Below are positions 4,128 through 62,615 of a stretch of DNA of 64,000 nucleotides, one piece after another. A program made the position numbers and the translations under genes. The first letter of the stretch is position 1. Each line of letters opens with the position of its first letter. Origin of the DNA: Andalucia godoyi And28 (taxonomy: Eukaryota > Protista > Jakobida); NCBI GenBank assembly GCA_009859145.1, contig VRVR01000011.1, positions 136,097-200,096 of the forward strand, given 5' to 3'. Below the pieces are notes generated by a model that was not told the DNA's origin, made no database searches, and worked only from the letters and a program-made list of their open reading frames with translations.

Positions 4128-4620
4128 CAAAAGCCGTGTGCCGTACACATGTTTAACTATCCATTCTCTACGAATCCGATCGTTTGCAAGCAGCTGTGCC
4201 TTGACATCCATCGCACAGCACGCACAAACAAGTTGCACCTCGTTTTTTTGTGTTTGTTTTTTTCCCCACATACGTTTCAACTTGCTGTCCTTGTAGCCGC
4301 CCCCCCCCCCCCTTTCTCATTACCTTACTTTATCTCGCTCAACAAGAGATTTTCAGACGATGATATTCTTCTGTCCGCCGGTTTTTTTCATTCACGACAG
4401 TTCATCGTCATTCCCATGCCCGTCCTGCCCGGCGACCGGCAGATCTGGTTCAAGATTGGAATGGTGCGCACAACATCAACTGGAAGAACGATTCGGCGTG
4501 CTGGGGCCTGCCACCCATTTCCGAATTGAATTCACATTCAGTTCGGATGCAAGACTTCATACGGATGACCAACAATGCTTCGCCATGCTTCATGTACAAT
4601 GCAGGCGAACGCAGTAAACT

Positions 4621-8372: not shown

Positions 8373-8609
8373 CCAAACCCAAAATGCCCTTCTTCTTCTT
8401 CTTGTTGTTGTTGTTCCAGTTTTTGTTATGTTGTGTATGTCCGTTCGGGAGAGAAGCTTCAACCTTTGAGAGGATGGTTTTGAAAGAAACTATTGTTCCG
8501 GCTCCATAAAAGTTTTTCCTTTTTATACATGTACATGTACCATTCGTTGTCTTGTTTTCAATTTGCCTTCGGGGGGGGGGGGGGTTGTGCAACCGATAAT
8601 CGCAACCTG

Positions 8610-9081
8610 TCTTTCCAAGATGCCGAGAACCAAGAAACCCGTTGGTTCTCCCTCGTCGGAGACGGAAAGCAAGGACAAGAAGAAGATCGTCAGACGGCAA
8701 CTTGTTGCGCAAGCTGGTAATGATCAAAAATCACGAAGATGTGGTTGATTTGCGTTCGGAATGCGCTTTCTTTCAAGCCAGAGGACAAGAAGGGGCAATG
8801 GCAAAAGCGTCGTCAGGCCCGATGTGCAACGCCGCCGCCGACATTCTGTTTCTTCCAACGTTCATTTTTTTGAATGCTGAACCAATTGGGAAATGTGTTG
8901 GTTGCGATAGCTCTTTGATGCAGAGCAATCTGCATTGAAGAGTTGGTGCTCGCTCTAAATATTTAAATAAATAAATAAATAAATAAATGTGGGTTGGATC
9001 TGTCGCTTTGCCCGATGACCAATAATGATTCATGTTTTGGGCGAGCGGAAAAGTGATCAAAAATGTCAATAACCTCCGCTC
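8610..9081 (+). mobile_element. Dispersed repeat family 2, copy 1: decayed ORF start plus structured 3' module
   Basis: Two blocks (8610-8690 and 8904-9048) align to the reverse complement of 53750-53970, including 39 identical nt (8915-8953 = rc of 53848-53886). Mobile origin is inferred from dispersal and decay. Confidence 0.65.
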
Positions 9082-9648
9082 CAATCTCCCCGATTACAGG
9101 ATATCCAACGATGTGTTCAATAATTGAAAAACATCATAAAGAATTTAAAATGCTAGTCCTAAACACTGCTAGAAAAAACGCCAAGGCTTCTTTCTTGTAT
9201 GCAGATATACATATGAATATATTAGTATACAATATTAGTATTATTATCCTTCCGTTCTTTCTGTTTCTGTGTTTACGCGACTTCTTTAATTTTAAGAAAG
9301 ATACTCTTCTGTGTCGATCTTCTTTAACAGCAACCAACGACGGTACTTCTTCTTTTCTGGTGTTTCTTCGTGCATTCCCCCCTTTCTCTCTCTCTTCCCC
9401 CAACCTCTTCTGAACGTCGTACTTGCTGCGTATGCCGATTCAACGTAGACGGAGAAAAAGGAACCATACATAGGGAGCAGCAGGCTGTCTAGGGTTTTAT
9501 CTTGCAGCTTGCATAGTTACCGACTTTGTGCGAGTTTCCCATAGACAAGCCGTGTCATTTAACAGATTTTTTTTATTTTCAGCGTTTTCCCTCTTCTCGT
9601 TCTGCTTGTCTTTCACTTCCTGTCGGTTGTGCTTGTTGCTGGTGATCG

Positions 9649-14579: not shown

Positions 14580-14854
14580 CCTTGGACTGCTCCCTGGGCG
14601 TTGCACTCTCTCGCGCCCGTTATTTATTGTTCTTATCCAATTTATTATCATGTCGACGGCTTGGCCGTTGCGTGTTTTGTTTTGCGAGCTGGGTGGTTCA
14701 GATATGAATGAAAATTCATAAACTGCACAAGAAGATCTGCAGTAACAGTACATATTTACCACTATACATCGTTCGTTCGTCCATCGAAACAGAAAACAAA
14801 AGAAAGAAAGGAAAGCACGCCCGGTTGCTGTCCCAGCTCTCTTTCCTGCTGGGC

Positions 14855-15813
14855 TCAGGAAGCAAATCTCTTCACAAACTTGTGCAAAAGCGTCCCTTCC
14901 TGATTCATTTCATGCGAGGGATCCTCTTGCAGCAGACTGGATGGTGGAAGAACAGGCTCTTGCAGCTCCTCTGATTCTCTCGACAGTGCAAAGTTGTGGT
15001 ACGTAGCCCCTCGTTCTTCAAGCATCTCACGCTCAGGAGACGCGATCTGCTCCTTGCGTACATTTTCATAAGCTTTCAGGTTCGTCTCTACAGTCTGGAA
15101 CAGCTGGGTCCACTCCGAGGCCGTCTGTTCGCAATCTGCCGCCACTTTGCGAACCCGTCTGCCAACATCGTCCCAATCACACGTTCGCTGCAGTTCCAAA
15201 AACTCTTTTTCAGAAATCGGAATGTCCACTTTTTCTTGAGATGCCTTGCTGAGCAACGCCACTCGAGCGCTCTTCTGCTGCTCAAACAACACGGAAAGTC
15301 TCTCAGATTCCTCGGTCCGCAATCGCGCAACATTCCTCTTCAGCTCTGAAACCTTCATTCGCAATTCTGCCAATTCTTGACCTGTTCAACAATGGAAAGC
15401 GGGCGGACCAAAAAAGAGTTTTTTAATTTTAAAAAAAACTCATCGATTCCAGAAGAGATAGAGAAAACAAGTCAGTTCTGACGGTCTCTTGTGAAGAAAC
15501 TATAAGAAAAAGGGAAGACAAACAGAGGAACACGTATGCACCCCAAGAAGAAGAAGAAATAGAACATACGAGAAATGGAAAGATCTTGAGCATTTCCTCC
15601 AAGAACAGCTTCATCTTCTTCCACAAGAGTATTGAGCTGCAAAATAGACGAAATTGTGGATTGCAGACGCGGAATATAGTTCATCATTGCTTTTCGTTGC
15701 GAAGAGTCCAGGCGACGTTGTGTCTGAGCCGATTCAAGATGCGCTCTCGCAGCAACTCGGAACACGTCTTCCAACGTATTCAGATGCGCTCGTTTCTGAA
15801 GTCTGACTTTCAT
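14855..15813 (-). CDS. Two-exon coiled-coil protein (exons 15813-15570 and 15381-14855; 256 aa), possibly kinetochore Nsl1/Mis14-like
   Basis: A GTATGT donor at 15569 and an AACAG acceptor ending at 15382 join two ORF-track fragments in frame (LSIS-R-QELAELRMKV); 244+527 = 771 nt. The Nsl1 resemblance is weak and recalled from memory. Confidence 0.7.
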
Positions 15814-16636
15814 AGCATCCACCCCCTCCCCCGGTCTGATGGCCACAGCACTGTATCTATGTGCAACAAGCAAGCAAAAACTTGATGATTTAAATTTCTT
15901 TTGTTTTTGTTGTTTCTGTTTGGGTTTTTTTAAATTTATTAATAAAAGAAATGCGTGTGAATATACGAAAAATCAACCAAGAAGAAGGAAGCGTGAGCGC
16001 AGGGAATCGGCAGAAAAGAAGAACGTTACTGCATCTGTTTTGTTTAGAGTTCATCCGTAGATCCAAGTGAAAGGAATGCCCTTTGTATCAATTGAGGATA
16101 GACCAGGCAAAGGCGAGTTTTTTTTTCCTTTCTGTGTTCCCCCGCCAATGCAAAGCCTTTTGCAGCTGCTCATGATTGTGACTGACAGCTAACGAAAGTG
16201 ACAATTAAAACTTTAAAACAGGAATGACAAAAAGTCAATAAACCCTGTGCAGATAAATATTAACAAAACGATCTGTCTCGTTCTTTGAAGTTTCTTCTTT
16301 GCTTCGCTTTTTTCTTCACTTTTTGGATATTTTTTATTTATTTATCATAGCGGGTGTTGAATCCGTCGTGATTTGACGTGTCTGTGCTGTACCTGCAAGT
16401 TTTGTTGTGGTGTTGGTGTTTGTTTTTGTTTTTTTTAAATCATCAAATCTTTTGATTTGTTCTTTTTGTTTGGGTTATTGTGTGTGTGGGTGTGTGTGTG
16501 TGTGTGTGGGCTAGAATATAGAATTAGTGGGGGGGAAAGCTTCTTTGCTTTCTTTTTGAGTTTTTGTTTGGAAACTGAAAAGAGTCACAGCAAGAAAAAA
16601 GAAGAGTGCGTGCAAAGCAAGTGAAGAATCACGAAA

Positions 16637-27469: not shown

Positions 27470-27860
27470 CGTCCCTCCTTTCCTCCTGTTTTTCGTTGAT
27501 TCTCTTCTTCTGCTTTTTTTTTTTTTTTGTCTTTTTCTTTTTGCTTTCTCGATCTTTTTCTTCTTCTTTCAATCGACACAAGCCGTTCACTATCCCGAAA
27601 AAGCAATGTACTGCTAGTGCTCAGTGCTCAGAGCCAAGTGAATCTTTGGCCCACAAGGAGCTCAGGAAGTAGGGGAACTCCTCCGGATCATTGCAAGTGA
27701 ACAGCATTCTCTTTTTATTTTTACAACCGCGAAGTTCACACATAGTCTTACAGAAAGACACATGCCTTTTTGGTTTGTTTTTTGAATAGAAAACTCACTC
27801 TTCATGTTCTTCTTCTTTTTTTAACAGATGACATTGAGCAATGGTGGTGATTTTCTTTGT

Positions 27861-28028
27861 TCAAATGTTTTTGGATGATTTAGCATCAAGGTTGTCTCTT
27901 GAGACGCGAACGGGGACGCCAGACTGTTCTACAGACAATTTGTAAATGTAGAATGCGAGTGCAAAGAGATGCAGTGCCACCAAGACAGCAACGAGCAGCG
28001 CCGCATTGCTTGAAATCGAAATATCCAT
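27861..28028 (-). CDS. Small single-TM protein (55 aa)
   Basis: MDISISSNAALLVAVLVALHLFALAFYIYKLSVEQSGVPVRVSRDNLDAKSSKNI; clean hydrophobic helix; sits in a GC-normal island between T-rich spacers. Confidence 0.5.
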   Translation of the reverse strand: MDISISSNAALLVAVLVALHLFALAFYIYKLSVEQSGVPVRVSRDNLDAKSSKNI

Positions 28029-28286
28029 TGAGGAAGGCTGCACTATGTCTACGCTTCTTGCCTCTGAACTCCGAGATATGCAAGGCAGCAAACTGGCAAA
28101 GCAGAGAAGAGAGACCCAGTGACAGGCAGACAGACGCACCCAGATGCTCAAGTTCTGGAGGGCCGGCCTCAAGCCCCTGCCGGAAAAAACATTGAAAAGA
28201 GCCCAAGTAGCCAGAGAAGGTGGAAGGCGCGTGTGCGGGTGCAGGAGACTGGACAAGGAGTTGAAAAGCATCGGTGAGGGGGGAAA

Positions 28287-28550
28287 ATGTCGTTATCAGA
28301 ACGAGTGCAGCAGAAGCTGACGACTGTATTACAAGCATCGATTGTCCAAGTGGAGGAAATGCCAGGCAGTTCGTGTGGAGACAAGCTGCGCGTGCTTGTC
28401 GTGTCAAGTGCGTTTGATGGAAAGGGACTGTTGGACAGACAGAGATTGGTGAACGACACACTGAAAGAAGAGTTTAATGAAATACACGCACTCACGTTCA
28501 AGAAGACGTGGACACCTGCTGAATATGAGGCCAAGAAACACACCTTGTAG
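28287..28550 (+). CDS. BOLA2: BolA-family protein (BolA2-like)
   Basis: SCGDKLRVLVVSSAFDGKGLLDRQRLVNDTLKEEFNEIHALTFKKTWTP. Confidence 0.9.
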   Translation: MSLSERVQQKLTTVLQASIVQVEEMPGSSCGDKLRVLVVSSAFDGKGLLDRQRLVNDTLKEEFNEIHALTFKKTWTPAEYEAKKHTL

Positions 28551-28731
28551 TTTTAAAAAACCCTAATAAAACCGACGACAGGACTGGATGGCAGGCATCC
28601 CCCCTTTCGCTCCTCGTCCTCGTCCTCTTCTTCTTCTTCTTCTTCTTCTTCCTTTTATGTTGTTGCCTTTCCCCCCTCGGAGCGTAAAAGGTAACTGTAA
28701 TAATAATAAATGAAAGAAAGAAAAACAGAAT

Positions 28732-33166: not shown

Positions 33167-36100
33167 ATGGTGCGCATCAAAACACGCTTGAATGTTTCGA
33201 ACCCTGCTACTGAATTGCAGAAAGCCATTTCGCGGCTTGCGACTTGCAAGTCGAAGCAGGACTGGATCGCTGCGTGGAGCGATACCTCTGTGCTCCTTCA
33301 CGTGAAGTATAGCACGAGATCTCGACATGACTTGCTGTATTGGGTGCCTGTATTAAACGCACTTGATGCGTCTCTTGCGGACGCAGATCCGGAAGATGAG
33401 GAGTTCGTTGCTGTGCTTTTGCGCATTTTCCGCTACTTGCTTGTGAATGCTTCTCATTCCCACTATTTCTCGTCGTATGATACGTTGAGAAAGCTGTTGT
33501 TTTCGCCGAGCCTTCCTGTGCTGAACATGGCGCTGGATCTGCTACTTGTTCTTATTCGTCCGCCTTTTCGTGTTAAGGACCAAGAGTTTGCTCGCTTCAG
33601 TCCTCTTATCGCGGTTCTATCATATTCCCTTCCCAAGGATCCCATCGAGAAATATAGAGTCGGATCTATTGCGTTTTCGTCTTCCGAGGTTGTGCAAGTT
33701 CAGTCGTATGCGCAATTGGAGTCGTGGTTTTCTACAATTGGGGCCAAGGAGGCTGGGGAAGACCGGGAAGAATTCAAATTTGCTGTCTGGATTCGCATTC
33801 TTCAGATTAGATGCGAGACAATCTCTTCTGATCGGTTGCATGACTATTGGAGCCAAATTCGTTTTCGCGCTTGTTCCATCCTGTCCTTTGATCGCAGCAA
33901 CCTCACTTCGGTAATTACCGTGTTCCATTTTCATCCGAATTTGTTAGATGAAATTTGCGATATCCTACTGTCCCCGTCGGCTCTTTTTACTGTCAAGACT
34001 GCTGCCGTCGAGTGCCTCTCCGGTTTGTTCATCGATATGGATCGGTCGGAAGTGGAAAGCGCATTGCAGCAGACACAACTCGGCGAGTTTTCTGGAGTGT
34101 TCCCGACATTTCTGCGAAACAAGGCGTATTTGGTTGTGGACAATCTTCCTTTTTTGGAATCTCTCCTGGAATGTTTCATCCTCCTTTCTCAGTCTAGCAC
34201 AGGCCTGAAAGCTCTGCAATCTTCAAAGCTGATCGATTTCTATGCCAATTATTTCTTGTCCTTGTCGGGAGACGACATCATATCTTTTGCAAAGATTTGT
34301 TCCCCAGTACTCGATCTCCTGGAAACGTTTCTGAGTCCGGGGCTTAATATTCCTTTCCCCTTCATTGATCTTGAACTGAAGTTTCTTCACACATGCGTTG
34401 AGTGGCTGAAGTTACGCCACTTTGATCAGCAGTCTCAGTTCAGCGATGTATCCTTTGCGTGTATGCAGTCGTGTTTAATACCGGCTCTAACAGCTGTTTG
34501 TGTCGCGCTGCAGAGTTCGCAAGGAAATTCTTTTCGCGCAGCGGTCATTGCATCGCATTTCGTTGCTGATTTGGATTTTCTGCTTTCAAATTTCACGGCC
34601 TTCGATGGAATTGTCGTTTCGTTTGTTGTGAGTGCACTTTCAGCCTTTCTGCAACAATCTCCTACATCCATCCCAAATCTCCTTCCGACTGGAATTTTAC
34701 AAAGGGTCTTTGATATCTTTTCTCTTCCGGCCGACCAGCTGCTGATGGAAACCGTAGTGGTGTCCATGCGTTTTGTGAGCTCTGTGTGTCTGATGGAGGA
34801 AGGCCGGGCTCTTTTCCGGCAAAACGGGCAGCTGTCTGCTTTGTCCAAGTTCTTTACGGATCCATCATATTCTCTCATCGCAAGTGGGAAGTGCGCTGTG
34901 ACTCTTGGAATACATATCGAAGAGTTTATTCGCCACAATCCGGAATTTGTGATGGATGCAGCAGGTCAGTTGCATGGGATTTTGATGTCGTTGGTTTCCC
35001 TTATCACGGACGTCTGCGGTCCCAAGACAGCGGCAGCAGATCTGGAGACGGTGAAACTGATGGCGTACAATGTTGTTCGCGTTCTTGACCCGGTATTCTC
35101 CTCTCGAACTTCAATTACTCTGACTCTCGTTGAAAAGGGCTCGCTGTCCGCGATTGCAAATTTGCTGACGAACGAAACGGTGCTGACCGTTTTCGGAGAC
35201 ACCTTGAGCCAACTTGTCAAGCTTTTTGCTGGCCCTGTGGGGACTCGCACAGCCTCGTCGGTCTCCATCTTGAACGAGCTCTGTAAATCCGTTTTGTCCT
35301 CTCCGCATCCCACAAATGTCAAGCTACTCATTGTCGAAAAGTGTCTTTCCATTCTGCTGATCGCTGTACAGGATGCGCGCTCGCATGATCCGCAACTGCT
35401 GGAGTCCATTTACCGCGTCCTTCCTTTGCTAAAAGTTCCTGTTTCTGTGTTTACACCGAATGCGAAGCCCGTTGTCGATCGCGAAGTGTTCAGGTTTTTC
35501 CGAACAGTGCGCTCGTTTGTTTTGCATGTTGTGGGCAGAACGTCTCGCCTCGCGGACAGTGAGTCTCTTCGGTTTGTGCAGCCAACTTGCTTGCTTTTTG
35601 CAGATCTAGATCCATCTTGCATTAAGCTCGCATCATCGTTATTCGATGAGAGCGGCAGGTTCCCGAAGCTTGAGGTGTTGTTTGACGCGTTTTTCTCTGC
35701 GTTGAACGCGCGTCTTTCAGTGCAGACCGAGGCGACACATCGGAAGGAAATTGCGGCAGCAATACTCCCGTTTGTGGAGAAGGCATTTCGTTATCGTGCT
35801 GTTGCGTCATCCGCAGTGTTGGTTTCAAACAAGGAATTTTTAGGGAAGTGGCGAAATTACTGTGCACGGTTGGTGTTGATATTCAGAGATCATCAGCTGT
35901 GGGACGCATCGCTATGTGCAGTTTTGTCAGAAATTGCATTTACATTCGGAAAGCAGTGGGATTCGCTGGTGTCACCGTCGACGGACGCCGAACCGACGTC
36001 CATTTCAGCGCCAGATGCGCCAGCGATTCCTCGACGGTCACAAACCGAGCGTCGCGCAGCCAGGAGTGCGCAACGCGAAGGACAGGTACAGTCGTTTGTG

Positions 36101-39100
36101 CAGCAATTGACTGGGATGGGTTTCACGGAAGTGCAAGCGCGCAATGGTCTCCGCAATGTCGAATACGGAGATGTTGTGGAAGCCATGGAGTGGATTCTTT
36201 CACATCCGTATCAATCTTTGGAGGAATCTTCCGAATCAACCCGTCCAGAAAGTGCGCTGGAAGCCAGCGCGATTTCAGAAACATCCGCAAATTTGTCTGC
36301 GGACGTTGTGGTCCCAGAGGGCGCTTCTGCGCTGCCATTGGTTGTGGATACACAAGGGACAGCGACAGGTTCTTCTGCCCCCTTTGTTGACGAACTTGTG
36401 CAAACGTTGAATGCTACGATAATGTCCGTGTTGACGCGAGAAGACTCCGTTCACGAGTCGCGGACCGCATGTCTCTTGCACCTTGCAAACTTCGTTTCGG
36501 GAGCAATGAATAAGGAGAGCTTGCGATCCTCAATTGACGTGGCCTCGTTTTACAGGAACATTCAGTTTTGTTCCGTGCTTGCTAACAAGTCTGCTGTATT
36601 CAGAGCGACGCTTGGTGAAGAGTTTTTCAGTGCCATGCATCACAGTTTCGTGAATATGCTGACTCAAGCAAAGTATTCTGATGACCTTGCCCACGATGTT
36701 GCTTCAATTCTTCTGCTCCTCCGCTGGGATCCGTCGGGAGCTCATCAATTAGCCGTTTTTGCGAAGACTGCGTTTTCGGTGTTTTGTTCGTCGATGATCG
36801 TTGTCTATGCATTCCTCCAAAGTGCTGTGCATGTCTGCCGACAGAGCTTTTCTGACGCAAATCTTATTGGAGAGGCGATCAGCCTGGATGCTATCTTTTC
36901 AGTCCCCCAGATCGCAAAATTTGACCGGTTCCCAGTTCTATTAAGCGCATTGCTTCGATTGACATCCGAAGATGAGGTAACTCTGCAGCAATCCATGGAA
37001 TTTGAAATTCGACGAATTGTCACCGCCTCCAAAGCAAAGGTGTTTGCGGACCTGGCCACGTTTTCTTCGCTTGCATCCCGTTCTTCCGTGATTTTTGAGA
37101 AGGCTCTTCTGCGGACGTGCATTGCGGTCGAAGGAGGAATCCGACTGAAGACTCGAGATGAAGTAGAAGGTCCATATTCAAATCTTTCATGTAGTAGACG
37201 GTTGAGAGTTGTCGTCGAAAGGTTGATTTCCTTCCTCGTGGATTCAGTGGCTGCTCAAAACAGCACTGTGGTCTTGCAGCCGGAGGAGGTATGTGTGTTG
37301 TTGTCGGATTTCGTTGCAGCTTATCCTGTTGCAGGCCCTTTGGTTGTGTCTGACGAACGAATATTTTCGACATTATTTTCTCTCAATTTGACGGATCGTC
37401 ACGTTGGCAATCTGTTGGTTCTGCTTTGCGGTCGCACTCCCAGCGTTACACTTTCCCATCTGTTGCTTTTCCTGAAGAGTGCGACAGACGTTGATTCGAT
37501 TTCCAAAGTCTTATCATTTCTTGTAACATTGATCAATCCGAAGCGGTCTTCCAGTTTCCGGTCCAAGGATTTGCTGTATTTGATGATTTTCCTCGGTTTT
37601 CCATCGGTGCTGATTTCGCTGCCGCAAAAATGCAATTTTTCGGTGCCAATTGTGAACACGTTGACTCGATGCTTATCTGTGCTGACCAAACCAGAGAATG
37701 TTCAAGTATCTCTTGTTAAGAACCGTGAAAAGTACGAGGCGTTGCTTGTTCAGGGAAGGAGGAGGGAGAAGGTGCATTTCTCGAATGAGGAGGGCGAATT
37801 TTCTTTTGTGCACGAGCCCGGCGAGGATTCCGATTTTTCGGCCATCAATGACAGAAGACTGGACAGCCCGGTGGAAGCAGGGTCTGCAGAAGAAGACTCC
37901 GGCAACGACGAGGAGGGCGAGGATACAGACGGGAACGGTGGAGTAGAAGAAATTACAATTCTTGACCAGGACGGAAACCCTATAGACATCTTGGACGAAT
38001 CCAGTGATGATGATTCGAACACTGATTCGAACGATTCTGTTTCCGATGGAGAGAATTCCGACGAGGATCTTGATGGAGATGGAGAAGGAATGGACACGAG
38101 TCAGGATATCATTCTGCAAGAAGTCGACCGCGGAGCCCATTTCCCGGGAGACGACATTGGAATTCAGTCAGATGATGATCTCAATGGAGATGACGACGAC
38201 GACGATGATGATGATGACGACGACGATGACGAAGAAGAAGATGGAGATCGAAACAGAAATGAGCATGGCTCTGCGGATGTCGATAACATGGACCGTGCCA
38301 TGGAGGACGTTCTTGCAGATCTGGGTGAGAATGGGGATCCTACGCAAAGTGGCGATGCTGCGTATGTTTCGGAGGGTGCATATGATGACGTGCATATGGA
38401 GTTCGTCCTTGAAGACGACGATTTGTTTGACTTCGCGATTGAAAGTCCTGCGGACATTTTAGATTTGTGGGATAGCGAAATCGGTTTCCAGCGCCGTCGA
38501 TCGCAGCCCGATCAAGAGTTTGCGCCTGCCATCAACGTTGCAGAACAGGAGATTGGGTTTCCACGGTCTTATGATCCTGCGTTAGCGTCTATTTTGCTTG
38601 ATGAGGATGTTGATCCAACGCCAGTGAGAGTCGATGTGATTGGAAACAGCGACATCCGAAGATCGCAATCAATGGATGTTGATGACATTTTGGAGCCACC
38701 CACTCCTGCTGTTGCGGCTGGTGCTTCCGCGTCCACGATAGAGGCTGATGGAAATTCTGCGCTGCCCTATGAGCGATCTGCCGTTGTGCATCCTTTCCTT
38801 ACTCGATTGTCGGCAGTAGAGAATGAACGCGCACGCCGCGCTTCGCAACCTCAAAGTGGCCGTGCTGCTCCGGCAATATTTTTCGAAGACGTCCTCTTGG
38901 ATCTACACAGCCGTCGTCCGATTGCGGGTCGAAGCAATCGACCTCACACGCACGTGGATGCGTCTTCTGTTCGCTGGTCGTATGGTTTGGAGGACGATGC
39001 AGAAACCTCTTCCTCTCCAGACGTTATGCCCTTGCTGGAGCGAGTCTTTTCGCAGATGTCTCATGAGCATCCACACCCACCTTCTCAGCCCCAACCGTCT

Positions 39101-42100
39101 ACCGAACTTCCTCCTGCCGTCATTTCCTCGGCCTCCACAGGTTCTGTTGCTGCCGCCAGTGCTGTGCCGGATGCTTTCACAGGCGTCGCCGCGGCTGCGG
39201 AAGTGATTGCGCCGGATGTGAGCAATTCGCAGCCTGTCAATCCAGCTACATCAAGTGTTGCAGACGAGCAAAGTGAATTGCAGAGCTTGAGGACACAAGC
39301 AGTGTCTCTGGGGATTGACCAGGATTTTGTAGATGCGCTTCCGCTCGAGCTTTTGCGAGATGTTGTTATGGAGAGGAATCGCGATCGCGATCGCGCTGCA
39401 GCTGCAGCAGCCACGGCAGCTCCAGTGGCGTCTTCAGTCGCTGAATCCTCTGCCGCTGCGTTGAATGTGTCGGATGTTTCTGCAAGAGCGGCGGACGACG
39501 GTTCCCATGTTCATAACGAGATTCAGTCGCAACGAGAGGCAGTAATTTCTGGAGACATTGATGCAGAATTTCTTGCAGCTCTTCCACCCGAACTGCAGGC
39601 GGAGGTTTTAGAACAACAGCGTTTGTTGCAACAACGTGCAGCCGAGCCCAGTTCTCCTCCAGCACGAGGGCCTGAAGATATGGACACCGCGTCGTTTATT
39701 GTTTCTCTGCCTCCAGAATTGCGAGAAGATATTTTGCTCACCACGGATCCTGCAGTTATCCTCCAGTTACCGCCACATATCCAAGCTGAAGCTCGCGCAC
39801 TGCGAGAGCGTGGTGCTCGAAGTCTTCACTCGGGGCATGGTCTTCCTCGTGTTGTCGCCTCTCATGCGGGCTCTTTCAGCATTGTTAGGGACGGCAACAA
39901 CGACGACGACGATGACGACGACGACGACGATGATGATGACGATGATAACGACGACAACGATGAGGTCGAAGACGATGATCGACATCTCGCACCCTTCCAA
40001 ATTGATGATATTGGAATGGAAGAGGATGAAGATGATACGCTGGTCAGTCCTGCAGGGGGTTCACGTCGACATGGCAGGACGCTTGCGGATAAGAAATCTG
40101 CGGCATCAAACTCGTCCGCTGCTGCTTCTCCCGAGTTCGCGTCTCTGCTCACAAAACTGTTGGCAGACGCGGATGTGATCGCCTGCTTGCAGTTGGAGCG
40201 GATTCCGAGTGATTCCGACTCCACGAAGTTTTGCCTCGGAGATGTGGCGGATTCCTTCTTGTCAAAGCCTGATATTTACTCTCTTGTCCGCATCTTGTTC
40301 ATTGCAGATCCTTTGCAATCCCAAGACCTTGAAGTTATTTTCGTGAACCTCATGACAATTCCCGAGACATCGGCGCTCATCGTTTCTGCCTTGATCTCTG
40401 TGATATCTCCGTCGTTTTCGGAAGGACCGCTGCTAATCCAGAGCAATGATCGCCATCTATTGGATCTTAAGCCATTTGTGGCTGCATTCGACAAAGGAGA
40501 TGTGTCTGTAGCTGTTCGTCGCGCAACCGCAGTTTTGTTCAGTGCTCTGCAGTCCAAGTCGCTGAACGTTCCGTCATTTTTGCTACGATCGGCCCATCCC
40601 ATTTCGGATGGTGATTTTCGCGAATTTCTGAGATTGATTGCAGACGGCTGTTTCTCTGGCCCCCAGTTGGTGGATGATCCCCGTGCGCACAATCTGTCAT
40701 TCAACGGATTCGTTCTCCCTCTTACGTACTTGTTTGACGTGATTCGCGATATTCCGCACGAGTCTTTGATCAATTGTGTCAAGCTGGTTTCTTCTTGCAT
40801 CCGATTTATCGAAAAGAAGTCGTCGGCGTTATTGAAAACCTTTCTGCGGGGCTTGGAGTTGCACAAAGGAGTTGCGGATGAAGTCGTGAAGGACAGGCTG
40901 GCTACCACGCTTCGACACGCGTTGTTGTTTTCAGTGTCGCAGAGCATCCGCAAGGAATCCGTACGTGCTTTGGTGGATCTTCTTTGTACACATCGGAATT
41001 CGGAAGCGCTGATGGGCGTCTCAAGACCTATCTTGCGGTGCATTGGAAGTTCTCCGGTATTGTGCCGGTTATTGTGTGAATGCGTTTGCGGGTTTGTGGA
41101 CCGATATGCGTCACAGATCGTGGCCGACACGTCCAACATTTCTGCAATTCGAGCCTTGCTGCGCGTCCTCAAGCTGTCGTCCTTGCTTCCGACGTCTTTG
41201 ATGCCTTTGCTGGAGGGGTCGGTGATTCTCAACGATCTCTGGAAGCGTATGGAGGACATTCCAGATCCTGCTTCGCGAGATGCATTAGTGGAAGCATATC
41301 TGACGCTTTGCACGATGGACGTGAAGCTACCCATGGCACCTCCCGAGTTCATTACGTCTGCAACACATCCGGTTGCAGGGGCGTCCCCCGAGTGGCATCG
41401 CCAAATGCACGCTTTCCTCGAAAAACATCGCCAAGCCGTGAATGATATTGTTTCTCGCAATCCCTCATTGTTGTCAAAGAAACCATTTGGAGTTTTGCTG
41501 AGCTTTCCCCGACAGCTTGATTTTGAGAACAAAGCCAATTGGTTCCGTGCGCAACTACGAAGGGCACTCAGACATTCCCCAGTGGATTCAGTTCGCATTA
41601 CTGTGCGTCGTCAGCACATTTTCGAAGATTCATTCTTTTCTTTACGTATCAAGACTCCTGAGGAGCTGCGCGGGCCTCTGACAGTGCGCTTTGACGGTGA
41701 GCAGGGCATCGACGCCGGTGGTGTGAGTCGTGAATGGTTCCTCGTTTTATCGCGAGAGATGTTCAATCCTAATTATGCTTTGTTCTGCGAATCGCACGAA
41801 TCTGCGACATTCCAGCCGAATCCGGCGTCGTACGTCAATCCGGATCACCTTGAGTATCTGCGGTTTGTCGGTAGGGTCGTTGGCCTTGCCATATTGAATG
41901 GCCATTTGTTGGACGCTTACTTTACACGGTCGTTCTTCAAGCACATGCTGGGAATACCGGTAACATATCACGATATTGCTTCGATTGATCCCGATTTTTA
42001 TAATTCGTTGAAGTGGACACTGGAAAACGATATTACGGGCGTCTTGGACTTGACGTTCACAAACGAAGTTGAAGAGTTTGGTGCGAAGAAGGTGACGGAG

Positions 42101-42661
42101 CTTATCCCGGGAGGTTCTCAAGTCGCCGTCACAGAGGAGAATAAGAAGGAGTACGTGCAGTTATTAACTGCGTCTCGCATGACATCATCCATTGAAAAGC
42201 AAATCGAGGCTTTTGTTCGAGGATTCCGAGAAGTAGTTCCAATGGATTTGATTTCAATTTTCAACGAAGCCGAACTAGAACTCCTTCTCAACGGAATGCC
42301 GGATATTGACATTGCTGATTTGCGAACCAATACGTTGTATTCTGGATATAGTGCTTCCGATACTGCGATCACATGGTTCTGGCGCATCGTTGAATCGTTC
42401 GAGAAGGAAGACAAGGCCCGTCTCGTGCAGTTTGTGACGGGTACGTCGAAAGTCCCGTTGGGCGGTTTCAAGGAGTCGATGGGAATGAGCGGCCCGCAAA
42501 AGTTTTCCATTCACAGAATTCGAGGTCGTGAGGATGCGCTGCCGACTGCGCACACTTGCTTCAATCAGTTGGACCTGCCCGAATACTCTTCTGAAGAACT
42601 ACTGAGAGAACGTCTGTTGGTTGCGATTCGAGAAGGGGCGGAGGGTTTTGCGTTCGCCTAG
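33167..42661 (+). CDS. HUWE1: HUWE1/Tom1/UPL1-type HECT E3 ubiquitin ligase (3164 aa)
   Basis: N-terminal ARM-like region (LLYWVPVLNALD), a UBA domain (LTGMGFTEVQARNGL...EAMEWILSH), an acidic region, UBM repeats (IDAEFLAALPPELQAEVL) and a HECT domain ending LPTAHTCFNQLDLPEY...EGFAFA. Confidence 0.96.
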   Translation: MVRIKTRLNVSNPATELQKAISRLATCKSKQDWIAAWSDTSVLLHVKYSTRSRHDLLYWVPVLNALDASLADADPEDEEFVAVLLRIFRYLLVNASHSHYFSSYDTLRKLLFSPSLPVLNMALDLLLVLIRPPFRVKDQEFARFSPLIAVLSYSLPKDPIEKYRVGSIAFSSSEVVQVQSYAQLESWFSTIGAKEAGEDREEFKFAVWIRILQIRCETISSDRLHDYWSQIRFRACSILSFDRSNLTSVITVFHFHPNLLDEICDILLSPSALFTVKTAAVECLSGLFIDMDRSEVESALQQTQLGEFSGVFPTFLRNKAYLVVDNLPFLESLLECFILLSQSSTGLKALQSSKLIDFYANYFLSLSGDDIISFAKICSPVLDLLETFLSPGLNIPFPFIDLELKFLHTCVEWLKLRHFDQQSQFSDVSFACMQSCLIPALTAVCVALQSSQGNSFRAAVIASHFVADLDFLLSNFTAFDGIVVSFVVSALSAFLQQSPTSIPNLLPTGILQRVFDIFSLPADQLLMETVVVSMRFVSSVCLMEEGRALFRQNGQLSALSKFFTDPSYSLIASGKCAVTLGIHIEEFIRHNPEFVMDAAGQLHGILMSLVSLITDVCGPKTAAADLETVKLMAYNVVRVLDPVFSSRTSITLTLVEKGSLSAIANLLTNETVLTVFGDTLSQLVKLFAGPVGTRTASSVSILNELCKSVLSSPHPTNVKLLIVEKCLSILLIAVQDARSHDPQLLESIYRVLPLLKVPVSVFTPNAKPVVDREVFRFFRTVRSFVLHVVGRTSRLADSESLRFVQPTCLLFADLDPSCIKLASSLFDESGRFPKLEVLFDAFFSALNARLSVQTEATHRKEIAAAILPFVEKAFRYRAVASSAVLVSNKEFLGKWRNYCARLVLIFRDHQLWDASLCAVLSEIAFTFGKQWDSLVSPSTDAEPTSISAPDAPAIPRRSQTERRAARSAQREGQVQSFVQQLTGMGFTEVQARNGLRNVEYGDVVEAMEWILSHPYQSLEESSESTRPESALEASAISETSANLSADVVVPEGASALPLVVDTQGTATGSSAPFVDELVQTLNATIMSVLTREDSVHESRTACLLHLANFVSGAMNKESLRSSIDVASFYRNIQFCSVLANKSAVFRATLGEEFFSAMHHSFVNMLTQAKYSDDLAHDVASILLLLRWDPSGAHQLAVFAKTAFSVFCSSMIVVYAFLQSAVHVCRQSFSDANLIGEAISLDAIFSVPQIAKFDRFPVLLSALLRLTSEDEVTLQQSMEFEIRRIVTASKAKVFADLATFSSLASRSSVIFEKALLRTCIAVEGGIRLKTRDEVEGPYSNLSCSRRLRVVVERLISFLVDSVAAQNSTVVLQPEEVCVLLSDFVAAYPVAGPLVVSDERIFSTLFSLNLTDRHVGNLLVLLCGRTPSVTLSHLLLFLKSATDVDSISKVLSFLVTLINPKRSSSFRSKDLLYLMIFLGFPSVLISLPQKCNFSVPIVNTLTRCLSVLTKPENVQVSLVKNREKYEALLVQGRRREKVHFSNEEGEFSFVHEPGEDSDFSAINDRRLDSPVEAGSAEEDSGNDEEGEDTDGNGGVEEITILDQDGNPIDILDESSDDDSNTDSNDSVSDGENSDEDLDGDGEGMDTSQDIILQEVDRGAHFPGDDIGIQSDDDLNGDDDDDDDDDDDDDDEEEDGDRNRNEHGSADVDNMDRAMEDVLADLGENGDPTQSGDAAYVSEGAYDDVHMEFVLEDDDLFDFAIESPADILDLWDSEIGFQRRRSQPDQEFAPAINVAEQEIGFPRSYDPALASILLDEDVDPTPVRVDVIGNSDIRRSQSMDVDDILEPPTPAVAAGASASTIEADGNSALPYERSAVVHPFLTRLSAVENERARRASQPQSGRAAPAIFFEDVLLDLHSRRPIAGRSNRPHTHVDASSVRWSYGLEDDAETSSSPDVMPLLERVFSQMSHEHPHPPSQPQPSTELPPAVISSASTGSVAAASAVPDAFTGVAAAAEVIAPDVSNSQPVNPATSSVADEQSELQSLRTQAVSLGIDQDFVDALPLELLRDVVMERNRDRDRAAAAAATAAPVASSVAESSAAALNVSDVSARAADDGSHVHNEIQSQREAVISGDIDAEFLAALPPELQAEVLEQQRLLQQRAAEPSSPPARGPEDMDTASFIVSLPPELREDILLTTDPAVILQLPPHIQAEARALRERGARSLHSGHGLPRVVASHAGSFSIVRDGNNDDDDDDDDDDDDDDDNDDNDEVEDDDRHLAPFQIDDIGMEEDEDDTLVSPAGGSRRHGRTLADKKSAASNSSAAASPEFASLLTKLLADADVIACLQLERIPSDSDSTKFCLGDVADSFLSKPDIYSLVRILFIADPLQSQDLEVIFVNLMTIPETSALIVSALISVISPSFSEGPLLIQSNDRHLLDLKPFVAAFDKGDVSVAVRRATAVLFSALQSKSLNVPSFLLRSAHPISDGDFREFLRLIADGCFSGPQLVDDPRAHNLSFNGFVLPLTYLFDVIRDIPHESLINCVKLVSSCIRFIEKKSSALLKTFLRGLELHKGVADEVVKDRLATTLRHALLFSVSQSIRKESVRALVDLLCTHRNSEALMGVSRPILRCIGSSPVLCRLLCECVCGFVDRYASQIVADTSNISAIRALLRVLKLSSLLPTSLMPLLEGSVILNDLWKRMEDIPDPASRDALVEAYLTLCTMDVKLPMAPPEFITSATHPVAGASPEWHRQMHAFLEKHRQAVNDIVSRNPSLLSKKPFGVLLSFPRQLDFENKANWFRAQLRRALRHSPVDSVRITVRRQHIFEDSFFSLRIKTPEELRGPLTVRFDGEQGIDAGGVSREWFLVLSREMFNPNYALFCESHESATFQPNPASYVNPDHLEYLRFVGRVVGLAILNGHLLDAYFTRSFFKHMLGIPVTYHDIASIDPDFYNSLKWTLENDITGVLDLTFTNEVEEFGAKKVTELIPGGSQVAVTEENKKEYVQLLTASRMTSSIEKQIEAFVRGFREVVPMDLISIFNEAELELLLNGMPDIDIADLRTNTLYSGYSASDTAITWFWRIVESFEKEDKARLVQFVTGTSKVPLGGFKESMGMSGPQKFSIHRIRGREDALPTAHTCFNQLDLPEYSSEELLRERLLVAIREGAEGFAFA

Positions 42662-48785: not shown

Positions 48786-50096
48786 ACGAAAAGAAAACAA
48801 GACCATTCAGCATGTTCAGTGTGTATGAGCAATCTGAGCGAGCAGATGGGAACCCGAAGAAAAAAAGGGGGAGGGAAGAAGCAAAGTCCGAGGGGGCCGC
48901 GTGCTTCTTTTTTTGGTATGTTGAACCTCGGCACTCGCACGAATTGGCAATCGAAGACAGCAAAAGAAGAAAAGACAGTCGAAGAGAACCAGAAGAGCCA
49001 GAATCAAAAAAAAGTGCGTGGCTGGGAAAAGATGTCGCTTTCCTCTCCTCTCCATGATTCATCGAATCTTCCCATAATTTTTTTGTTTGCTTGGGGGAGG
49101 GGGGCCAAGTGGGCAGCGAGGGGAACATCGCCCAAAACCGGAACGGAGTGTGTTTTGCTCCGACAGCAGTTCAACATGGAAGCCGACATGTCGACCGAAA
49201 AAAGTGTTGTTCCGACACCAGCTGATTTTGACAGATTTCCCGCAAATCAACGAAAACAAAAAAAGAAGGAGAAGAGAGAAGTTGATGCCCATCGCTCGAG
49301 ACTCGAGACTCGAGACTGGACCTCTTTTGAGTCGGACATAAGTATTTGGACACTATTTTTTCGTTTTGGCCAGCTTCTGTTCACATCTTCGTTTATGGTT
49401 TTCTCCTTATTTTCTATTTCTTTCTGCATTGCTTCCTTTCATACTTCAGTTTCAGTCTCTGTTGCTAGATGCCTTTGGTCCTTTCCCTCTGCTCTTGTTT
49501 CTTCATCATCTCATAAGCACTTTTTGTTTTAAGTATAGTTTTTTTTCATTCAAAAAGAAAAGAAGAAGAAAAATACTTTGATTACCAGTCGTGTAGAGAA
49601 TCCATCAAGACGGGAACCGAATCTTCTTTCCTCTTCTTCTTGTCAAAAAGAGAAAAAAGAACAACAGCAACAAAATACACTTCACCAAAAACAAACAGGT
49701 TTGGGTGAGGGGAAAACTCGCGGATCTGTGTGTTTTCCTCGGTTTTTTCCCCAATATTTTTGTTCGATTTGGCTTTTGCTAGTTTTTGTCAGGTTTTTCA
49801 TCTTCATTTTTGTATTGCGTGCTTTATTTTCTTTTTTGTTTGGTTTTCTTTGGTGTCAAAATATCAACAACCGGTGTTCGAAGTTTTTGTCCTTTGTGTG
49901 CGTGCGTGTGTTTGTTTTTGTTTGTCTGCAGGTTGGTTGGTAGAGTATACATAGTTTTTTGGGCGTATTTTTTGTGATTTTGATTTGAATTTTGGTGTTT
50001 AGCATCGTTTGCTCTGTACCTAATATTGTCTGTGGGTTTCGTTTGATTGTTGTAGTATTTTTTAATTGTTTGTGTGTGTGGGTGAGACAGAAGAGA

Positions 50097-50121
50097 AGAG
50101 AGAGAGAGAGAGAGAGAGAGA
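50097..50121 (+). repeat. (GA)n microsatellite 10 nt upstream of the Mei2-like ATG
   Basis: Seen directly in the sequence. Confidence 0.9.
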
Positions 50122-50131
50122 TATTTGAATC

Positions 50132-53699: not shown

Positions 53700-53990
53700 C
53701 TTTGCGAGCGACGGCTATCGAGCCTGTGACTGTTGCATTACGAAGCCGCTTTCTTGCCGCTCGCCAAAAACATGGATCATTACTGATCATCGGCTAAGCT
53801 GTCACGGCAGACAGATCCAAGTCACATGTTTTGTGTTTATTGGAGGGGCGAGCACCAACTCTTCAATGCAGATTGCTCTGCATCAAGGGGTCATCGCTTC
53901 TTCTTCTTGCTCTCGGCCTCCGACGAGAGGGGATCAACGGTTTTCTTGGTTCTCAGTGTTTGTTGGAGAGATCCCTCTTTGGAGCCATGA
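53700..53990 (-). mobile_element. Dispersed repeat family 2, copy 2 (shorter)
   Basis: Reverse complement aligns to 8610-8690 and 8904-9048 and lacks the ~210-nt middle of copy 1. Its decayed ORF LRTKKTVDPLSSEAESKKKKR corresponds to PRTKKPVGSPSSETESKDKKK in copy 1. Confidence 0.65.
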
Positions 53991-54224
53991 TATGCTTTGT
54001 CTTTGATGAAAGATGCTGTTTGAGGGCTCGATTATAATAATGAGAGACAAACAGAAGATGGTAGAGAGAAGGGAAAATGTGAAAGAATGAAAGAAATTTA
54101 TAGACTAGACTACGATAGGAAAATCGCGTCTCCATAGGGTTAGATGAACCAGCTCCTGGTATGAGGTTGCTTGTTCAATGTTTCATACAACAAAAAAAAA
54201 CCGTCAACCATCAATCTTTCGACG

Positions 54225-54330
54225 CCTACATTATGCACTGAACATGCATATCTTTTCGTAGATATGCATACTCAGTCTTGCATCCCGTTGCCGGGAAGGG
54301 GGTAGGCCCCAACACGCCTCACGGCATTCT
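54225..54330 (-). ncRNA. Candidate omegaRNA scaffold, subtype 2, of relic B
   Basis: GGGG-CCTA-CCCC, then TCCCG-GCAA-CGGGA (GNRA loop), then a 17-bp stem ACTGAGTATGCATATCT/AGATATGCATGTTCAGT with two G-U pairs. Expression is not shown. Confidence 0.6.
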
Positions 54331-54595
54331 TCAGATAGATGTTCCGCGCTCCGTTCCCAATCTCGATCAATCGGTGAGCCACTTTCTCAGCGTGGCACGT
54401 TGCTCCTGAGAAGGGTGCATTTTGATGCTGACGGCCCTAGCAGCAGGCGCTTTCGTGTCCTCAGTTGCAGCGATTGATGTACCTGGAGATACGAGAGGAA
54501 GAGGCGGCAGGCGTAGTGACACGTGGTCTCTTAGGAGGTCTGCGGGACCTAGGAGGCCCTGTATCGGGCGGCGTAGGCGTAGGCGAATGCGTCAT
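54225..54595 (-). mobile_element. Fanzor2/IS607-TnpB-like relic B (second subfamily; left boundary undetermined)
   Basis: Minus strand: Pro/basic leader from ATG 54595, then RAVSIKMHPSQEQRATLRKW (54438-54379, TnpB N-terminal HTH-like) joined almost directly to IDRDW/NGARNIYLKN (54371-54326, one-base frameshift). It then shares GGCGTGTTGGGGCCTACCCCCTTCCC and terminal AATGTAGG with relic C. Confidence 0.8.
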
Positions 54596-57530: not shown

Positions 57531-57762
57531 TCATGAAATCCCTATAAACACGCCGCCGCGTTGCATTCTCGCACAGCGACGCTCATTTCATATCTTTATT
57601 TTTACTGTCCATGCAACGCGACATCTATCTTAAGAACGTCTCTCATGCCGAGGGGCGTGTTGGGGCCTACCCCCTTCCCAATCATGCTATGCATGTTGTT
57701 GGGTTGCAACATTGGTTATGGGTGATCAGTGATGCTTATCCGTGGTTATTGTACAATGTAGG
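57531..57762 (+). mobile_element. Fanzor2-derived minimal non-autonomous element C (232 bp: left end + omegaRNA right end)
   Basis: The left ~85 nt match rc(44182-44100) and the remainder matches rc(43640-43501). Only RDIYLKNV survives of the ORF. Confidence 0.85.
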
Positions 57763-57841
57763 CACCGTCGCCACCCACTCCGACACCTATTTCATTTTCA
57801 TCTTCCGTTTTTCTCCCTCCAACTGACGAAAACTCTTGCGC

Positions 57842-61163: not shown

Positions 61164-62301
<1,138 letters not shown>

Positions 62302-62615
62302 TTTTCTTCTTTCAGTGCCCTGACTTTTCCCCCCAGCCCCGCAGACAAGAATGAAGAAACACTCGTGGGAACTTGGAAAACGTGTCGTGCACCAGCGCTG
62401 CAAGTGGGTTTTCACACATACACACTCTCTCACACAGTCAAGCACTGTATCAGCTTGATGCTTACCAGTCCCGAAATGGGTCACGTTTTGGAGAAAACAC
62501 TATGCACGTGGAAATTCGTTTCCCTTTTCTTTTCTTTTCTTTTCTTTCTATTCTATTCAGAGAGACAGAGAGAAAGAAAGAAAGAAAGAAAGAAGGAGAA
62601 AAGGTGGTATTGGAA

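Follow-up and report, generated by a model that had tools for sequence, protein, structure and literature searches.

A two-copy repeat with an exceptionally stable hairpin in Andalucia godoyi: possibly the relic of a low-copy mobile element

INTRODUCTION

TnpB and Fanzor elements encode a guide (omega) RNA at their right end. In our literature search we found no paper linking Fanzor/TnpB-type systems to jakobids or Discoba. The genome of the jakobid Andalucia godoyi is ~20 Mb in size and tightly packed; introns occur in only 12% of 864 characterised genes (candidate mitochondrial proteins) and range from 55 to 756 nt, and subtelomeric transposon- and virus-like scaffolds were omitted from the main assembly (PMC7050145). 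Here we analyse a repeat found twice in a 64,000-nt stretch of this genome (assembly GCA_009859145.1), on scaffold VRVR01000011.1, which we refer to as the window. It holds ordinary housekeeping genes on both strands, separated by spacers with a median length of ~520 nt, together with five TnpB/Fanzor-like relics. The two copies of the repeat (hereafter the element) occupy two of the six longest spacers (1276 and 1618 nt), one bordered by PDH-E2 and asparaginase-like genes and the other by RRM-protein and helicase genes.

In its architecture, the element resembles TnpB/Fanzor2 (IS607-type) systems. As in their right-end omega/reRNA scaffolds, a module of ~150 nt starts at the end of an open frame. 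As in the relics of this window, there is a long hairpin together with a helix that has its 3' strand at the boundary of the element, the copies are short deletion derivatives joining a 5' start to a ~150-nt 3' end, terminal inverted repeats are absent, and the copies reside in the same over-long spacers. Unlike the relics, however, the element shows neither sequence nor covariance-model similarity to relic 3' ends, and its hairpin and closing helix come in a different order; nor can a TnpB/RuvC or zinc-finger remnant be detected in it by alignment. Alignable similarity between the copies ends at ~9051-9056 in copy 1 and 53754-53749 in copy 2, though short islands complementary to the conserved end recur further 3'.

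Three other kinds of hairpin-bearing sequence invite comparison. Like MITE- or PATE-like elements, the repeat is short (~200 bp in copy 2), non-coding and intergenic, with a strong palindrome and an apparent origin by internal deletion; unlike them, it has no terminal inverted repeats and no visible target-site duplication, and only two copies are known. Helitrons also lack terminal inverted repeats and have a stable hairpin near the 3' end, but theirs lies ~10-20 nt from a CTRR terminus, whereas similarity in the element runs ~105 nt past the hairpin, and in copy 2 no CTRR follows it. Finally, an imperfect stem of ~20 bp with G·U pairs and with a 3' arm better conserved than the lower 5' arm is reminiscent of miRNA-like hairpin precursors; however, the only Rfam matches are at chance level (mir-2059 with 17.6 bits, where the gathering score is 90, and E = 3.2).

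RESULTS

A discrete repeat present in two copies

Copy 1 is on the forward strand and copy 2 on the reverse strand. Their features are as follows.

Copy 1
8620-8622 (+), ATG just outside the 5' shared block, not common to copy 2
8623-8685 (+), 5' shared block, 63 nt (58 nt aligned at 83%)
8625-8633/8642-8650 (+), 9-bp perfect inverted repeat, copy 1 only
8686-8903 (+), copy-1-only block of ~217 nt, an internal indel relative to copy 2, open in the frame of 8687
8908-8945 (+), hairpin P1, 17 contiguous pairs, GCAA loop at 8925-8928
8915-8953 (+), 39-nt core identical to 53886-53848 (-), from pattern scan and alignment
8947-8954 (+), box a (TGCTCGCT; TGCTCGCY), just 3' of the hairpin, complement of box b (9040-9047) in both copies
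8955-8987 (+), A/T-rich linker, (TAAA)n in copy 1, 13 nt shorter in copy 2, with AATAAA in both
8995-9000/9027-9032 (+), stem 2 (TGGATC/GATTCA) with the well-conserved loop CCGATGAYCARTAAT
9033-9056 (+), 3' end of the shared sequence, CATGTTTT(G/T)GGCGAGCGG
9040-9047 (+), box b (GGCGAGCG), at the end of the shared sequence
9075-9081 and 9127-9133 (+), flank islands TCCGCTC (stem 3) and AAAACAT, complementary to the conserved end

Copy 2
53897-53956 (-), 5' shared block, with no ATG at the homologous place
53749-53897 (-), 3' module, containing P1, core, box a, stem 2 and box b
53893-53856 (-), P1, with two C·A mismatches
53854-53847 (-), box a
53765-53758 (-), box b
53710-53704 (CGCTCGC) and 53687-53681 (AAACATG) (-), counterparts of the flank islands

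Local alignment pairs 8623-8685 with 53956-53897 and 8904-9051 with 53897-53754, with 156 matches in 179 ungapped columns (~87% identity). The two blocks are contiguous in copy 2 and are held apart in copy 1 by the ~217 extra bases of 8686-8903. Outside them, the flanks (60-140 nt on each side) are no more similar than shuffled sequence; therefore, the repeat stands by itself and does not belong to some larger duplicated segment. Each copy is flanked by TATAAA-like and AATAAA motifs. When one end of a copy was compared with the other in inverted orientation, neither copy exceeded shuffled sequence, and no duplicated flank that would indicate a target-site duplication was seen on reading the junctions.

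The first-pass annotation of this DNA, made from the sequence alone, had drawn attention to a 39-nt core identical in the two copies and embedded in clearly more diverged sequence. Both observations proved correct, the surrounding divergence amounting to 23 mismatches in the 179 columns plus indels. The core spans the upper 5' arm, the loop and the entire 3' arm of P1, as well as GGTGCTCGC. An identical run of at least 39 nt has a chance of 1.5% if the differences are placed at random while respecting indels, or 5.4% if indels are ignored, making the run modestly unusual for this divergence (p = 0.015-0.054). When a 37-mer from the core was searched for in the window with up to three mismatches, only 8917-8953 (+) and 53848-53884 (-) were found, against an expectation of zero.

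No third copy emerged in the window from blastn with word size 7, from all-against-all blastn of the spacers or from a covariance model of the module (R2) run with filters off, and exact-pattern scans of viral and metagenome collections returned no match for the hairpin core or the conserved 3' island. What had been called a dispersed repeat family is indeed a discrete repeat, but one with exactly two copies in the window searches; within the data reached, there are only two copies and no covariation between them, both among the outcomes that the annotation had named as counting against its reading.

Runs of ten or more G or C residues occur in the window only twice, as C13 (4300-4312) and G14 (8571-8584). 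Each lies ~30-40 nt upstream of a repeat 5' limit, that of the 4.5-kb relic for C13 and that of copy 1 for G14. Their placement may be a coincidence, or the tracts may be part of the elements or of their target.

The hairpin and its strand

The RNA fold of 8904-8953 has an energy of -26.8 kcal/mol (z = -5.1 against dinucleotide shuffles). Once 8904-8906/8947-8949 are added to the contiguous helix, P1 of copy 1 comprises 20 pairs, five of them G·U, in agreement with the GCAA-capped stem of ~20 bp that had been proposed at 8904-8949. Among all 50-nt segments of the 64 kb, folded on both strands, P1 ranks second of 42,634 in stability, even though the G+C content of the region is only ~44%. The loop is of the GNRA type and the G·U pairs are confined to one strand. 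The sense fold is better than the antisense fold in both copies (-26.8 vs -17.1 kcal/mol in copy 1, -19.7 vs -17.6 kcal/mol in copy 2), which upholds the strand assigned earlier on the basis of the G-U pairs. The 'decayed ORF start' noted on this same strand is the ATG at 8620, which falls immediately before the shared sequence and has no equivalent in copy 2.

Four differences distinguish the 5' arm of P1 in copy 2. Two of them preserve a pair (A-U to G·U in one case, G·U to A-U in the other), and the remaining two are uncompensated C·A mismatches in the lower stem, with the energy at the -19.7 kcal/mol given above. Among the 31 proposed pairs, none is changed on both sides, four are changed on one side and two are broken, in a comparison of two sequences that has almost no power. 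All six stem substitutions are transitions and, since by our reasoning roughly half of transitions keep pairing by chance, the preservation of pairing in four of the six is uninformative.

Is the module a structured RNA?

Downstream of P1, the case for structure is mixed. The region of stems 2 and 3 folds like shuffles (z ~ -0.2), extended versions of it reach z = -2.5 in copy 1 and -0.6 in copy 2, and the module of copy 2 is no better than shuffles (z = -0.6 to -1.5). Thus, for the second and third stems described previously, the complementary hexamers and heptamers are present (8995-9000/9027-9032, 9043-9049/9075-9081 and 53764-53758/53710-53704), but they do not fold better than shuffled sequence. 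RNAalifold predicts that box a and box b form a long-range helix around stem 2, with this helix and stem 2 kept in each copy. Helix a:b has eight pairs, seven of them invariant and one with a U·G to C-G change; by our estimate ~0.7 matches of 7-8 bp are expected by chance within 150 nt. Stem 2 has six pairs, one with a G·U to G-C change, and is not favoured thermodynamically. Moreover, the conserved end (CATGTTTT..GCGAGCGG) has nested complements in the otherwise unalignable flanks of both copies: a single 7-mer pairing at the same place in both copies is reached by 3.9% of flank shuffles, and the actual flanks contain two that are nested. We regard the flank complements, helix a:b and the sense-strand preference as hints, not proof, of a structured RNA.

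Rfam, to which the first-pass annotation had pointed as a check, yielded no known family: release 15 gave no match at gathering thresholds in the whole window, and a relaxed search around both copies (E up to 10) gave chance-level matches only. ARAGORN detected no tRNA-like sequence in the window, and we dropped a tRNA-derived SINE as a candidate, there being no tRNA-like head with A and B boxes. H/ACA or C/D snoRNA boxes are not present in the element sequence on reading. With no compensatory pairs, four one-sided changes, two broken pairs and no Rfam family at any threshold, the earlier structured-RNA reading is not borne out. Its options were a guide-RNA scaffold, a retroelement 3' end and an ncRNA, and two sequences cannot separate these.

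Coding potential of copy 1

We scored codon usage with a model trained on 22 window genes, for which the in-frame gene mean is 0.16 and the intergenic mean -0.19. By this measure, the frame from the ATG at 8620 resembles that of a gene across the 5' block (+0.20 for copy 1, where it covers 23 codons, and +0.09 for copy 2), and the frame of 8687 is gene-like over the copy-1-only block (+0.128, a value reached by 3.2% of intergenic windows). The GT..AG interval 8717-8777 (61 nt) would join both frames into an 85-aa product with its stop codon at 8936-8938, inside the 3' arm of the hairpin. By our count, the differences in the 5' block are distributed 4/2/4 over codon positions 1/2/3.

Neither the spliced 85-aa model nor any of the single-exon ATG ORFs of at least 45 aa that we tested from both spacers is present in the public proteome, which does contain the flanking genes. 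No protein relative of the open frames was found in Pfam, NCBIfam or PDB sequences, with phmmer against 1.84 billion representatives or in a word-indexed search. Likewise, no frame of the element has similarity to a transposase, TnpB or reverse transcriptase, and BLASTP of the element frames against a TnpB/Fanzor relic protein encoded outside the window (P0121, described below) detected nothing. We read the gene-like interior of copy 1 as the remains of an element ORF. Two short peptide strings attracted attention and were dropped. One was the histone-H3-tail-like 'MPRTKKP...RRQLVAQAG', which is unsupported, the 42-aa frame having no family in a Pfam scan. The other was 'NAAADIL', whose resemblance to the DxNAAxNI motif made it look like RuvC-III; no model supports it.

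The TnpB/Fanzor-like relics

Five relics are present in the window.

4340-4612 (+), relic R4k
44182-43490 (-), relic R43k
53520-53262 (-), relic R53k
54600-54222 (-), relic R54k
57531-57770 (+), relic R57k

They constitute one TnpB/Fanzor2-like (IS607-type) family. The longest relic encodes '...CCPSCNCTIDRDWNGTRNI...', matches Pfam Cas12f1-like_TNB at 25.7 bits against a cut-off of 26.3, and has IS607_TnpB as its best NCBIfam match (E = 0.0035). The relic 3' ends share a fold, in which a closing helix (GCCUAC:GUAGGC, or GCCUGC:GCAGGC by compensatory change in the 4.5-kb relic) is accompanied by a long hairpin of differing sequence and by the common terminus AATGTAGGCG; in the consensus fold, 7 of 26 pairs have double changes. 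Since these ends are demonstrably structured, right-end RNA scaffolds exist in this genome. The relics at 57531-57770 and 54600-54222 have the deletion-derivative form that is also seen in the element.

The element is distinct from this family, as the first-pass annotation had maintained. An nhmmer profile of the relic 3' ends recovered all five relics and nothing in the element. The covariance model built from the same five ends (R1) scored the relics at 100-128 bits and gave nothing at 8.9-9.1 kb or 53.7-53.9 kb with E up to 10. The element 5' block has no similarity to relic 5' ends. Two weak similarities to R4k were noticed. One pairs 9014-9031 with 4564-4581 and is borderline after multiple-test correction. 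The other, in the copy-1-only block, pairs 8898-8871 (-) with 4513-4540 (+), where the relic has its first hairpin, and agrees at 24 of 28 positions with one gap; it lies above all 300 shuffles and is also borderline after the same correction. The two are in mutually opposite orientations and out of register. The frames that precede the hairpin match no TnpB model of Pfam or NCBIfam even at E = 1-10, although strong decay could conceal such similarity, and the window contains no intact partner protein. An 18-mer taken from the relics had three matches in the viral collection, which by our estimate is about what chance would give.

Two further observations concern the relics themselves. In the 54-kb relic, an unrelated A/T-rich hairpin of 17 bp (54232-54281, -) replaces the usual 3' hairpin at the same position, starting at the stop codon of the relic ORF, and the 124-nt 3'-end fold (54222-54345) has z = -4.3; it looks like a case of structure being kept while sequence was replaced. 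P0121 corresponds to EukProt ANDGO_08534, which the A. godoyi proteome lists as a 'hypothetical protein' and which is 126 aa long. It shares 78% identity with the 43-kb relic, shows the same domain-match behaviour as the longest relic and is a deletion-derivative TnpB/Fanzor relic, with RuvC-I-like 'LDPGVRTFATGY' fused to the zinc-finger/RuvC-III end.

DISCUSSION

Which kind of sequence would leave two copies with sharp limits, a large internal difference and a hairpin of such stability? The reading we favour, tentatively, is that the copies are two decaying deletion derivatives of a low-copy, non-autonomous mobile element, the hairpin module of which may have been a 3' cis-acting or RNA-scaffold part. 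Each copy would join a 5' block of ~60 nt to a 3' module of ~150 nt. Their internal breakpoints would differ: ~217 nt of an interior that once encoded protein would survive in copy 1, and nothing of it in copy 2. The 3' module would begin with the long hairpin at the stop codon and end in a G/C box that could base-pair with the bases directly following the hairpin. Such a module might have served as a cis-acting part, either the transposon end that is recognised or the scaffold for an RNA that the element encoded, like omega RNA.

Several lines of evidence point to this reading. Similarity is confined to discrete blocks, and a large internal indel has left both ends in place, as in the relics at 57531-57770 and 54600-54222. 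The over-long spacers fit a mobile-element remnant, as does the setting of copy 2, which lies between two TnpB/Fanzor-like relics and on the same strand as both. Gene-like codon usage in the copy-1-only block is what would be expected of a remnant ORF, and the absence of the candidate ORFs from a proteome that includes their neighbours also counts in its favour. The extreme stability of the hairpin, better on the sense strand, argues for a relic that contains a hairpin module, while the two uncompensated breaks in copy 2 point to decay rather than constraint; the present copies are probably non-functional. On the other side stand the two known copies, the failure to find terminal inverted repeats or target-site duplications, the lack of transposase, TnpB or reverse-transcriptase similarity, and the relic models, which do not match. 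Pure decay, moreover, does not predict the 39-nt identity and the recurring flank complementarity, both of which hint at some constraint.

The copies might also be an old duplicated fragment without function, in which the hairpin is an imperfect palindrome that arose by accident and the core is identical by chance or through a short tract of gene conversion. We consider this rather unlikely. Two copies with ~87% identity are all that it requires, the length of the identical run reaches just p = 0.015-0.054, stems 2 and 3 are not significant, and a long-range match of 7-8 bp is expected by chance within 150 nt on our estimate. However, it does not account for a hairpin that ranks second among 42,634 segments, for the sharp limits of similarity with an internal indel that preserves the ends, or for nested complements to the conserved end that recur in both flanks. 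Two paralogues of a small cellular gene for a structured ncRNA, folded into P1, helix a:b, stem 2 and a flank stem, have these points in their favour: the hairpin is exceptionally stable, with a GNRA loop and G·U pairs on one strand only, the core is longer than expected (p = 0.015-0.05), the RNAalifold helices are kept in both copies with four one-sided, pair-preserving changes, and the complements of the conserved 3' end lie in flanks that cannot be aligned. Nevertheless, this too is unlikely, given the zero compensatory changes, the two broken P1 pairs and the shuffle-level fold of the module in copy 2 (z = -0.6 to -1.5), an Rfam search empty to E 10, and no tRNA-like part. Such a gene also leaves the shared 5' block and the 217-nt indel unexplained, and copy 2 runs against both flanking genes amid a cluster of transposon debris. 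Also unlikely, in our view, is that the module serves as scaffold for a guide or regulatory RNA of a kind not described so far, encoded by the element and belonging to a second RNA-guided or RNA-dependent mobile system in this jakobid, unrelated in sequence to the relics. The hairpin and the boundary helix would then still be under some constraint, at which the identical 39-mer and the recurring complements in both flanks hint.

The remaining alternatives start from the open frames and from the A-rich tract. Copy 1 could be a small protein-coding gene (ATG at 8620, intron 8717-8777, stop at 8936-8938, 85 aa) and copy 2 its internally deleted pseudogene, the hairpin then being a stop-codon or 3'-UTR element upstream of AATAAA. 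Codon usage in the frames of 8620 (5' block) and 8687 (interior) is compatible with such a gene, the possible 61-nt intron that would join them is within the size range of the species (55-756 nt; PMC7050145), and both copies have TATAAA-like and AATAAA motifs at their flanks. Yet neither the product nor the single-exon ORFs tested appear in the public proteome beside their neighbours, no homologue was found in ~1.8 billion representative proteins or in the word-indexed search, Pfam and NCBIfam are negative, the 4/2/4 distribution of differences in the 5' block speaks against it, the ATG lies outside the shared sequence, and copy 2 has neither ATG nor interior; we consider the idea improbable. 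Still harder to credit is a retroposon 3' end, in which a stem-loop recognised by a reverse transcriptase would be followed by an A-rich (TAAA)n tail and the shared sequence downstream would represent a preferred target. An A-rich tract does begin no more than 10 nt after the hairpin in both copies, (TAAA)n in copy 1 and AATAAACACAAAACA in copy 2. However, the copies remain similar for another ~65 nt beyond the tract (83-88% identity), their difference is an internal one, with a common 5' block, and not a 5' truncation, and no reverse-transcriptase remnant was found in the window.

If the favoured reading of a decaying mobile-element relic is right, the element is of purely local interest, as a further decayed family among the repeats of a very compact genome from a deep branch of the eukaryotes. 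If, on the other hand, longer copies with a partner protein exist, the module would mark a new type of RNA scaffold in Discoba. Within this window, the TnpB/Fanzor-like relics with their covarying 3' ends are a better-supported lead than the element.

Other features of the window

Spacers longer than 1.2 kb also occur at 14580-16636, 27470-28731 and 48786-50131. No dispersed repeat is detectable in them within the window, and they may hold unannotated genes or unique element debris. An opposite-strand (CT)n microsatellite of ~160 nt (62141-62302) lies inside the long ORF of a ubiquitin C-terminal hydrolase gene, where it would read as (ER)n upstream of the likely start MSWCTIESDPG. The window also contains an uninterrupted ORF of 3,164 codons at 33167-42661 (+).
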